The translations under genes were made by a program, and so were the position numbers. A stretch of DNA of 60,258 nt, counting the filler, from Hausera hauseri (lineage: Eukaryota), in assembly GCA_046269625.1 (NCBI GenBank). It is 9 parts of 9 records of this genome, joined end to end, with 100 filler letters (N's around TTAATTAATTAA, not from the genome) between each part and the next. Parts side by side here need not be neighbours in the genome. Positions count along the whole stretch, not along the records: positions 32,771 to 37,085 come from JBJURY010639552.1; 8 more parts are not named here. The stretch is one strand, 5' to 3'. How positions within the stretch are numbered: position 1 is the first letter of the stretch; each line of letters begins with the position of its first letter. Under the pieces are notes generated by a model, which was not told the origin of the DNA, made no database searches, and worked only from the letters and a program-made list of their open reading frames with translations. Shown piece after piece: positions 33,022-37,010 of the stretch.

Positions 33022-33880
33022 CAATAAAGCCAATACTGCGACCGAGAACAAACAAAGCATTTAAAGATCCAATCTCCACGAATTCGTTGGCCTCCTCCCT
33101 ACCGAACAGCTAAAATAAAAAAAACGTACGCATTAACAAACAGGGAGAAGATACCACTGTTGCGCAGTAAATCAACCATTCCTGTTCCAATTACCCCGTC
33201 AACATTGAGAATAAGATTCGGTTTCTAAACACCAGACCTTATCACAAATGATGACTAAATTATGTTGAAACCTTTGATGTCGTTATCTTCTCGACTTGCA
33301 ATGCATATTGCAACAATGAACAACATGGGAAGTTATTCATAACATATTCTTTCAATATTTCAACTCGCTTGTCCGGATTATTTATGGACTTTACACGATG
33401 ACCGATCCCCATTATAAGCTTCCCTTCTTTTCGAGTCTGGTTTACGAAATCCATCGGGCTCAAATTAGAATCAAATGCGGCACTGAATTGCTTAGCAGCC
33501 CCATCGAGAGCTCCACCAAATCGATCACCCTATCATAGGGCAAGTAACACAAGGAAAAAGTCATCAACTTACAATAGTTAGTAGACCTGATGTTAAGCAT
33601 GACACAAGATCCTTACCTGCTCTAGCACATACAATGGTATTGTGAGCACCAGAAACTGCAGGACCATGATCTGCAGTAACCATTATGCACATCTCGATAA
33701 ACTGAGGCGTAAAAAGGTAACCGTTTCTGAAACCACGGCAATCCTAAAACACCACCAATACCAAAATCTTTCTGAATGATGTTGCTTATGGGAATCTCGG
33801 CGTAAAGTAATTCTGAACCCCTTTCGTCGCATATTGACGTCATGAATGAAGCTGGTTTCCTGATAATACCCAATTCACTA
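33022..33880 (-). pseudogene. ACLY: ATP-citrate lyase C-terminal (citryl-CoA lyase) fragment with small introns
   Basis: [78 protein letters not shown] and [16 protein letters not shown] introns at 33530-33572 (43 nt) and 33225-33271 (47 nt). One frameshift; the last exon was not found. Confidence 0.95.
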
Positions 33881-33889
33881 GTTACCTTT

Positions 33890-34992
33890 AGCATTCCTTC
33901 AAACACGGCTTGTGAAATGGTTATAATCTTTCCGCTACCAGTCGAATCAAAATAAGGCGTAGATATTGATATTTTTGTTTGATTTTCTAATGTTCTTCGA
34001 TACCATGGTCGTTTAGTAGGATCATATAATCGAGTTGATCTATGACCCGGAAAAGTATGAAAAACACCAGATTGCAATCCAACATATGTCCATGTAACTT
34101 TATCCAGTGACTCAAAATCTCTTGTCACCCAATAATTTTCAATAGGCTGAATAAGTAGTACATAAAATCAAGTACCTTTGACATATTTTCTATCGGAATC
34201 GCAGCCCAGGTCTGAGTAATTAGTTATCTCATTCATATATTTGTAAGTATCGAGTGTCTTTTGAGCAAAGTTATGGTTGAAAAAGTGTTTATTTGGATAA
34301 CAATGACAACTGGGAGCAAAGAATATGATCGGAAAATTGTATGTAACCCTTAACATTGGATGCTTCTTTCCATCAAACTTAACTTGAAGAATGTGAAGAA
34401 TATTATTTATTAAGAATGCAGTTACAGAACTCCATTGATATTGTTCTAGTAGCATCTCGATTTCTTCTAGGGTTAAATCAACTCCAGCCACGCAAATTAA
34501 TCGACCGTCGTTCTTACTAATGGCTGGTACAGCGTGAGTTATCATTAATCCGGTCTTAAATGAATCAATATACGGTGAGGTCCAAAAACCCTCCTTAACA
34601 TCTGATGCTTTTGCTAGAAATTCAAAATAGTTGGATAGCTGAGAGATCAAGTTTTCGCCAGATACTATCTTTCGCCATGCACCCTGGTTGTTGCAAGCAA
34701 TATGTCCCGGTAGTGATTCTCTGTCCTCTTTTATAAGATAGCTAAATATTCGTGCGGGTCTAACTAAATTGCTATTAGTGATATTTATTACGTTAAATAT
34801 TTTTGTTAAATTATACTTACAAAACGGACCGGGGACATATCCAGATGGTGTGTAGTATCCTGGACCACATCGAACATTTTCTCCGTCCGTATCAACTCCA
34901 TCAGTTAGGAAAACGATTATACTCTGACATCCTGTTCGAGGAACACTCTTCAACAAGTTAACCGCCAATTCAAACCCGGTTTCTAATTCGCT
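33890..34992 (-). pseudogene. CACHD1: VWA/Cache domain (CACHD1/alpha2delta-like) internal fragment
   Basis: IIVFLTDG, FWTSPYIDSFKTGLMITHAVP, VAGVDLTL and [42 protein letters not shown]. Appears to have an internal deletion and a frameshift. Confidence 0.8.
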
Positions 34993-37010
34993 TTCAACGT
35001 TGCGCATATCGAACCAAATTTTCATCAGTAAAGTTAAAACTAATCTACACACAATTCTCCTGTTATCCGATGAACTCAGAGAATTCAAAGAATCGTGCAT
35101 CTCTTTAAGTATTCTAATACATGCTTGTACCATGACAGGATCTGATATCATGTTACTGGATGGAGAATTGAAAAAATTACCCAATACCATTTGACGAACA
35201 TCAATAATAACGTATTCTTTGTCAAATAAGGCTAGATATTAAATAAATTCCGTAGAAGAAAACAATCCCTCATAATTACAATTGAAACTGAGTATCTTAC
35301 TGAGGATCGACTGTAATAGACTGTAGAACTCGTGGTACTCACCGTTCTTTGTCACCTCCTTCGTGATGTGACCCAGAAATTTATTGATGTAACTGATATC
35401 GAAATTCAGTGACAGGAATTCCGCCCACGTATCCATACACTCAATGAAATGCCGACATTCCGTCAACTTGACGATGTACTTCCAAACGTATTTCATCAGC
35501 TGCATTGCGACATCTTTGCCGAGTGAGAAACGCAGTGACACACACACACCGAGTTGTTTGTAAAGCGTATATTTCGGATAGCTCGTGTCCTGCAGTGCGT
35601 TAATCATTTCCGCAAAATACAACGGCCGTTTCTCGATGTAACCGGTGTCAATGGAATTCAGTATGGAATGAACGAGTAAGGGATTTTGCATTTTATCAAT
35701 ACGGTCAACGATCCGATCCAGTTCATGTTCGTTGGCAGTCGCACACAGACACTGTAAGATCCAATCGACAGCCGGCACAAACAATCGCAAGTATGGCATC
35801 TGATTGCCGGACATTGTTGACTGATAATTCAATTCGGACACTTTCGTCATTCGACCGAGACTTTCCAGAATATCGTCAAAAGCAATTTGCAGATAATCCC
35901 GTTGATCCGGACAAAGCATTATGCCAATTCGAGCAACGTACGCTCGTGCATAAGTGGACAAAAGCGAATTGCCGATTCCGCGAGTCATTTTCATCAGTCG
36001 AATTAACGATGTTGGAATGGCGGTAGAATCGAAAAATTTATAACAAGGCAACAAAGATGCCTCAACGTACAAACGAGCAACCAATTCCCGAATTGAAGCG
36101 ACTTTATAAAACCAATTTCGTGCGGTTTCTTTGGCAACTTCCGGTACATTTGTTTCTTTAAAAATATCTGGCAACGGAATCGGAACTTTGGAACCTCGTT
36201 GGATGTAAACGGATTTCGATTTCAAACGATCGTAAACGAGATCGGCAAAGTTATCAACGAGATCGGTAATTAACACAAATTTGCTGGGGAAAAATTGAGC
36301 AACTATTGATTCCGATAGAAGTTTTGTGCTTTGGATTATTATTTGTAACGCACGGACTCGTTGGCCGTCTTGCCATGATAACTTCAATGACGTATTTAAC
36401 TCGTGGATTTTCTCGGTGAATTGTGACACACTCAAATTGGACGTTTCACGGATTTCTTCATCAAACTGATCCATTTGATCAAATTTACTGCGGACTTTGT
36501 CGAGCATACTTTGTGGATTGCCCGGTGGGTTTAAAATTCGAACTTCTTCATTCGGTTTAGATGTTAAAAAACTACTGACAATACTCAGTTTTTCTGATGT
36601 GGTATAAGTTGCTAGAATGTTTATTCGTTTGGACGACCACGGTTCAATGTTGATAATTGCCTTTGGTTTAGATGAATCAACTGTGCCAAACGAATAGTTA
36701 TCATACGTAGCGTGTAAGGGATTCGGACAGGAGAGAGGATCAACAAATGATGTTCTAAATAAATAACTATGAATGATTTTCATTCTTTAAATAATTTCTA
36801 CTTTGATGAAGACTGATCTTTTAATGCATCTCCTTTGCCTACAGCAGCGGATTTGTTGCCTTTAAAATTAGGCTGTAATGGATGCTGATCAACAGCAACA
36901 GAAACACAATGCTTTTCAAGCTTGTAGTACCTATCTTTAAATGTAAACATTTAGAATAGCTACAAAATTCTAAACAAAATAAATATTAGAATACAATAAT
37001 TGTACTTCAT
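34993..37010 (-). pseudogene. VPS35L: VPS35-like Retriever subunit (C16orf62), N-terminal ~600 codons
   Basis: W..GQRVRALQIIIQSTKLL, QFFPSKFVLITD, AKETARNWFYKVASIRELVARLYVE and RGIGNSLLSTYARAY. One in-frame TAA at 35239-35241 and a 47-nt intron at 36755-36801. Homology continues to about 34993. Confidence 0.92.

Follow-up and report, generated by a model that had tools for sequence, protein, structure and literature searches.

How does a single reading frame come to hold parts of three unrelated genes? The question is raised by a 60,258-nucleotide stretch of DNA from Hausera hauseri (assembly GCA_046269625.1), here called the window, which joins 9 parts of the genome with filler between them, and in particular by the 4.3-kb piece at positions 32771-37085, taken from record JBJURY010639552.1. 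On the minus strand, which carries all features described below, one frame extends from 36786 to 33625, interrupted by no more than two stops, and it reads in turn as VPS35L, as a member of the calcium-channel alpha2delta family and as ATP-citrate lyase (ACLY; Table 1). A preliminary description of this DNA had reported such an in-frame series of VPS35L, VWA/Cache and ACLY on one strand, and its identities and both of its junctions were found where it had placed them. A public sequencing run that holds the stretch contains copies of the alpha2delta and ACLY genes with intact frames, while the frame in the window is damaged; the locus is a broken, decaying pseudogene and not a working new gene. 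As to its origin, I consider it probable, if not strongly so, that it is a real mosaic, left when a redundant copy of VPS35L, an alpha2delta-3-like gene and ACLY, three genes following each other in one orientation, collapsed through at least three illegitimate end-joining deletions.

The identity of the pieces was determined by querying exons and stop-free stretches one by one against proteins and profiles. Window positions 36786-35242 correspond to residues 113-569 of human VPS35L (E = 5e-94, PDB 8p0v_O), and beyond an in-frame TAA the similarity goes on from 35238 to 34984 (human residues 572-654); tblastn with two orthologues is collinear over 36756-34984 and lets the TAA fall on a conserved proline. 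The first exon shows weak, position-consistent similarity to the N-termini of VPS35L orthologues (R.Y.LE...HPLQP). From 34992 the frame (SELETGFELAVNLL) represents the C-terminal half of a VWA domain and the Cache-1 domain (Pfam PF22673) of the alpha2delta family, with 54-58% identity to relatives. The preliminary description had called this segment CACHD1-like, which holds for the family, and a second Cache part does match CACHD1 residues 725-814 (E = 1.5e-15). However, the middle part is nearest to alpha2delta-3, several relatives being named alpha-2/delta-3 by their source, and it consists of two fragments of one gene that meet at a junction, 34401/34390, which had been missed. The frame from 33879 matches ACLY residues 828-888 (E = 1e-22) and is followed by three more exons of the citrate-synthase-like end of ACLY (Citrate_synt; tblastn). 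In three word-based protein searches the best identities were about 60% for the alpha2delta part, about 40% for VPS35L and about 79% for ACLY, with relatives across many animal phyla, and a near-identical protein was found for none of the parts.

All three joins, namely J1 between VPS35L and alpha2delta, J1b inside alpha2delta and J2 between alpha2delta and ACLY, preserve the reading frame. Two of them can be placed to the nucleotide with the contigs of X1, the sole public sequencing run that holds the stretch, for which the Logan contigs provide a separate assembly (k = 31) containing 0.65 of the window's sampled words: parent-like contigs part from the window exactly at 34401 and 34390 for J1b and at 33881 for J2. 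On the upper side of J1b, three X1 contigs track the window to 34401 and go on as RGHAIFHPLL, which is how alpha2delta normally continues after AFLINN. On its lower side, a 92%-identical contig (34112-34390) tracks the window to 34390, and the sequence before that point reads ...SYPHVFKH, which matches relatives (PTEFDT/LQVK in the protein P0131). At J2, two contigs depart from the window at 33881, and their in-frame continuation, PMDYSWA, is that of intact ACLY.

The alpha2delta gap at J1b amounts to 142 residues when set against relatives of 1190 amino acids and against locus L001, and to 141 against another relative, P0208. Locus L001 (L001:338-3925, on metagenome contig Ga0099821_1080698) is an intron-less alpha2delta-like open reading frame of 1196 codons from another compact-genome animal, and it served as a ruler for the absent parts. 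The filler at this junction, TTCTTCACAT, gives a near-tandem copy of the adjoining 9 nt (ATTCTTCAc/ATTCTTCAa). At J1, the 9 nt AGCGAATTA, coding for SEL, fit VPS35L homologues (..FEQQL) and alpha2delta homologues (GGTSELE) alike, and from this overlap with relatives a microhomology is possible. At J2, a variant contig reads NVTRELG, with alpha2delta relatives reading NVTRE/Y and ACLY reading WARE/L; judged from these relatives and from that one contig, the two sides may have shared a microhomology of up to about 9 nt (up to CTAGAGAAT).

Processed pseudogenes and retro-chimeras such as jingwei resemble the locus, as they too are non-functional or chimeric gene copies. However, this is not a processed pseudogene: it retains four short introns (43-47 nt) and has its breakpoints in the middle of exons, which places the joins at the DNA level and excludes an RNA intermediate, unlike in retro-chimeras of the jingwei type. 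The earlier view that the pieces are genomic rather than spliced thus stands.

The joins could in principle have been made in the laboratory or in the computer, by an assembly misjoin or as a chimera from whole-genome amplification or library preparation. The contig is short, only one public run contains it, perhaps that of the source sample, and 35% of the sampled window words are absent from the contigs of this run. However, contigs from the second assembler cross J1 (421 nt, 34897-35317, with the TAA included) and J1b (391 nt, 34075-34465) and are identical to the window, at depths of 7.8 and 6.1, respectively, versus 10.5 in the flanks. At J2, three X1 contigs cover 33847-33877, of which the third (depth 17.8) reaches 33925 and changes at 33883 and 33886; I deduce from the depth and end-distance columns, and not from a listed record, that this contig is a diverged copy across the junction. 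Furthermore, the fragments differ by 8-9% from the intact genes, carry nonsense and frameshift lesions and have lost conserved residues, and three co-oriented artefact joins within 1.1 kb that all keep the frame would be very unlikely. Because the breakpoints are set by parent-like sequences and the fragments are 8-9% diverged, I judge an assembly or amplification chimera, which the preliminary description had raised against itself, to be very improbable, even though X1 may not be an independent sample.

The lesions differ from those first described. Where one stop and about two frameshifts had been counted, there are three in-frame stops and one 2-nt deletion. The TAA at 35241-35239 replaces the conserved proline of VPS35L, and the TGA at 34170-34168 is CGA in the 92% parent-like contig and R in relatives. 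The 2-nt deletion lies near 33703, where three X1 variants carry 2 extra nucleotides and read YASQ, YASK or YALQ before FIEMC, as in orthologues. The third stop, TGA at 33007-33005, sits at the Q of HYLDQ in orthologues, and the conserved KRLKQGLY that should follow is then apparently absent, as far as the tail can be read. Between the window and the 92% parent-like alpha2delta contig, 15 of the 15 listed differences are non-synonymous, and at most of these sites it is the parent-like copy that keeps the residue of the relatives (D, Y, D, L, A, H, R, A). The changes in the window are mostly from G/C to A/T, which is the expected look of decay in an AT-rich genome whose third positions are A/T already. 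The VPS35L part has changed at 42 of 143 highly conserved columns (29%, versus 0-22% in 25 orthologues), the ACLY part at 8 of 118 conserved columns (7%).

The age of the mosaic is less easily read from these lesions. Two stops in 3.1 kb correspond to about 2% neutral change and not to 8%, which fits the recent origin that had been suggested. On the other hand, the nearest parent-like contigs differ from the window by 8-9% and many conserved residues are lost, which does not fit it; this distance probably includes older divergence between gene copies.

A frame kept over three junctions, a well conserved ACLY part and few stops could also be taken for a working fusion gene, in which the stops are read through or lie in unrecognised introns. 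I find this hardly credible, as both the TAA and the TGA align to conserved residues in collinear orthologue alignments and lie outside introns, and as the 2-nt deletion breaks the ACLY part. The product would in addition be incomplete: the alpha2delta part is missing approximately 350 N-terminal residues, with the signal peptide, VWA_N and the first VWA half, as well as approximately 330 at the other end (the C-terminal third), and the VPS35L part is without its last third. A genuine single gene in other species would speak for such a fusion, as the preliminary description had recognised. However, no protein spanning J1 occurs in the best 150 of 387 phmmer hits, obtained with a query of 356 amino acids across J1 and J1b against 1.84 billion representatives, and every best stretch among these 150 begins at query residue 77 or later (at least 77). 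A fusion of VPS35L with alpha2delta was likewise missing from length-limited word searches of proteins.

If the mosaic is a broken copy, its layout gives the best indication of how it was made. The fragments all share one orientation and follow each other from 5' to 3', from the natural start of VPS35L to the natural end of ACLY, and this layout, together with an internal deletion in a single gene and with filler and possible microhomology, is the pattern expected of illegitimate deletions in a redundant run of genes. I therefore infer that the parents were neighbours, that the mechanism was deletional and that J1 and J2 involved microhomology. The starting point would have been a redundant copy, either a segmental duplicate or a homeologue, in which VPS35L, the alpha2delta-3-like gene and ACLY followed each other in one orientation. 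The deletion at J1 would have fused VPS35L codon ~654 to alpha2delta codon ~351, the one at J1b would have dropped about 141 alpha2delta codons and left the 10-nt templated filler, and the one at J2 would have fused alpha2delta codon ~853 to ACLY codon ~828. After the joining, the copy decayed: it gained two internal nonsense codons and lost 2 nt, its ACLY C-terminus was damaged, and conserved residues were hit by changes from GC to AT. Of the three mechanisms proposed in the preliminary description, microhomology-mediated deletions in a duplicated gene-dense segment fit best, in view of the co-orientation, the start-to-end layout and the filler at J1b, with the microhomology at J1 and J2 put forward from relatives; an undescribed rearrangement process is not needed.

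Alternatively, the mosaic could be real and yet stem from dispersed parents, by template switching of the type of fork stalling and template switching (FoSTeS) or microhomology-mediated break-induced replication (MMBIR), or by patchwork repair of a double-strand break. Pieces of three loci would then have been copied into a single site, possibly the native VPS35L locus, which would have been destroyed thereby. The templated filler at J1b and the short presumed microhomologies are also a signature of template switching, X1 holds several alpha2delta and ACLY copies and no parent-like VPS35L contig, and stops are rarer in the VPS35L part than one would predict from the 8-9% by which the other parts diverge. 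However, the shared orientation, the natural order and the natural start and end would not be expected of random ectopic templates, and J1b, being internal to one gene, is better explained by a simple deletion. I regard an origin from dispersed parents as unlikely, though deserving of attention.

In X1 the ACLY-like sequences are more numerous than the rest of the mosaic. Over 33635-33922, the most conserved part of an ACLY exon, 12-13 contigs run in parallel with a summed depth of about 100-138, versus about 10 elsewhere, and at least three distinct ACLY variants with intact frames are present at a depth of 6-7 each. The sample is thus either polyploid or multi-copy for ACLY-like genes, or it contains several related genomes. 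Two further X1 contigs agree with the window at and above 33646, and the letters before this point equal 33478-33468 (11 of 15), which suggests that another ACLY-like copy joins ..GPAVSGA to FDST... by a deletion of 166 nt (41 codons and a 43-nt intron) that is in frame and does not follow GT-AG. In the alpha2delta part, the sole X1 counterpart of the region 34450-34926 is a 98% variant that has 9 substitutions and, at 34641, a 2-nt deletion that would break the frame. The contigs on either side do not differ from the window, which points to a second haplotype, or another copy, of the mosaic that carries a lesion of its own.

Pack-type and Helitron elements carry intron-bearing fragments of several genes. 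The locus shares with Pack-MULEs and Helitrons that intron-bearing fragments of unrelated genes adjoin each other and that chimeric frames can result, and transposon capture by a Pack-MULE, Pack-CACTA or Helitron element, of which the window would show the interior, had been among the proposed mechanisms; the 12-13 contigs stacked on the first ACLY exon part could mean many copies of such an element. However, depth is high over the most conserved ACLY exon only, genes with intact frames account for some of the extra ACLY contigs, and the VPS35L part is covered in X1 by a single contig at a depth of 10.5; the whole mosaic shows no sign of a raised copy number, although copy number cannot be read from contigs. 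Within 32771-37085 there are no terminal inverted, direct or tandem repeats, a result that covers the piece only, so that element ends may lie beyond it. At 0.5-2 kb the fragments are large; they also share one orientation and run from a natural ATG to a natural gene end, unlike captured internal fragments. Capture by a transposon is in my view improbable. Rfam and tRNA scans of the piece were also blank.

Several observations weigh against the collapse of a redundant run of neighbouring genes, as I prefer to read the locus. X1 may be the very sample behind the window, so that its contigs represent a second assembly and not necessarily a second sample. The intact-frame alpha2delta and ACLY copies, which leave the window at the junctions, may belong to another genome than the mosaic. 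No parent-like VPS35L contig with an identity of at least 90% was found in X1, and the VPS35L part could be the native locus rather than a duplicate. In a collection of metagenomes, the search with the VPS35L part returned no related locus, and the alpha2delta alignment led to 12 loci of distant relatives, all within alpha2delta genes, with flanks that are without VPS35L or ACLY and that carry no synteny information. Decay is uneven, with the alpha2delta part heavily changed, the ACLY part little so and just two stops over the whole frame. Finally, three of three joins are in frame and the deletion in the ACLY-like copy would be a fourth, for which simple chance is roughly 0.04-0.1.

The last of these points deserves a closer look. 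Under the deletion model, the naive chance of three in-frame joins is 1/27. However, k-mers shared between the coding parts are enriched in phase, with fractions of 0.37-0.48 at k = 5-6 and 0.6-0.75 at k = 7-9 (small counts), and in-phase microhomology makes a kept frame less improbable. As, in addition, only in-frame cases would be noticed by a reader of the sequence, I treat the keeping of the frame as a helped coincidence. From the three in-frame joins and the apparent in-frame 166-nt deletion one could also argue that it is no accident, and that some process of the genome, or a selective filter, stitches co-oriented fragments together in frame; on this view the parallel ACLY-like contigs would represent a whole family of mosaic genes, of which some might be expressed. 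I consider this a long shot.

The deletional origin preferred here has parallels in known systems. In Drosophila melanogaster, Sdic is a chimera of the adjacent genes AnnX and Cdic that arose via duplication and subsequent deletions (PMC3395120). As in Sdic, parts of different genes are fused at the DNA level, introns are kept, and small deletions and frameshifts came later; the survival of intact parents and an origin by deletion in a duplicated block would be further common traits. However, Sdic is an expressed, functional, tandem family, whereas the mosaic is broken by stops and a frameshift and draws on three gene families whose adjacency would be ancestral to it only on the reading given above. 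Fractionation after polyploidy in maize proceeds by short deletions flanked by direct repeats of 3-24 bp (PMC2893956). There, a redundant copy is reduced by deletions within exons through illegitimate recombination, as would be the case here, the short end repeats of the present locus being presumed; several diverged intact copies are also present in the X1 sample. In contrast, the deletions described in maize are mostly short and confined to single genes, and two of the deletions proposed here would each remove the end of one gene, the intergenic spacer and the beginning of its neighbour. That the organism is polyploid is a guess from the many parallel contigs.

The locus provides a breakpoint-resolved animal example in which illegitimate deletions would turn redundant gene copies into chimeric reading frames, and such deletions are both raw material for gene fusion and a route of gene loss after duplication. 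Should the parents prove adjacent in a genome that is polyploid or duplicated, the locus would document fractionation deletions over several genes in a metazoan. For annotation the consequences are direct, as the locus would be called either one long 'VPS35L-VWA-Cache-ACLY' protein or three partial genes; it should be flagged as a pseudogene.

Table 1. Features of the mosaic locus and its flanks, from the 5' to the 3' end of the minus strand (window coordinates).
Feature	Positions	Strand	Evidence or remark
Natural upstream region (5' flank) of the VPS35L-derived start, 23% GC	36951-37085	-	ends with the piece; no repeat or terminal inverted repeat partner
VPS35L exon 1, 149 nt, ATG at 36950-36948	36802-36950	-	open reading frame and weak N-terminal matches
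Intron in VPS35L part, 47 nt, GTAG...TTAG	36755-36801	-	frame 0 to 2; orthologue alignment resumes at 36756
VPS35L coding, human residues ~100-651, broken only by TAA 35241-35239	34993-36754	-	homology
Junction J1, 9 nt AGCGAATTA (SEL), possible microhomology	34984-34992	-	claimed by homologues of both sides
alpha2delta fragment 1, VWA C-terminal half and Cache-1, intron-free	34401-34983	-	residues ~351-548 of 1190-aa relatives
Junction J1b, 10-nt filler TTCTTCACAT replacing ~141-142 alpha2delta codons	34391-34400	-	bridged by identical X1 contig
alpha2delta fragment 2, linker and second Cache part, TGA 34170-34168	33882-34390	-	residues ~691-853 of relatives
ACLY exon part, human residue ~828 to ..LLTI	33573-33881	-	junction J2 at 33882/33881; 2-nt deletion between 33703 and 33702
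Intron in ACLY part, 43 nt, GTAAGT...GATAG	33530-33572	-	tblastn and splice reading
ACLY exon, GDRFGG...ITTSK	33272-33529	-	Pfam Citrate_synt 2e-7; tblastn; identical X1 contig 33169-33497
Intron in ACLY part, 47 nt	33225-33271	-	
ACLY exon, KPNLILNVDG...GIFS	33142-33224	-	tblastn
Intron in ACLY part, 43 nt	33099-33141	-	covered by identical X1 contig 32993-33156
Last ACLY exon, closes at TGA 33007-33005	33005-33098	-	tblastn; reading of the tail presumptive
Degenerate ACLY tail and 3' flank, 29% GC	32771-33004	-	ends with the piece

No intron interrupts the alpha2delta part. Two candidates there were rejected: an apparent in-frame intron (KYNLTKIFNVINITNSNL) and a possible one of 29 nt that would enclose the TGA at 34168 both align to coding sequence of relatives. 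Upstream of the mosaic, a short hairpin-like inverted repeat is present at 37030-37060 (AATCTGTA ... TACAGATT), about 90 nt before the VPS35L start codon.

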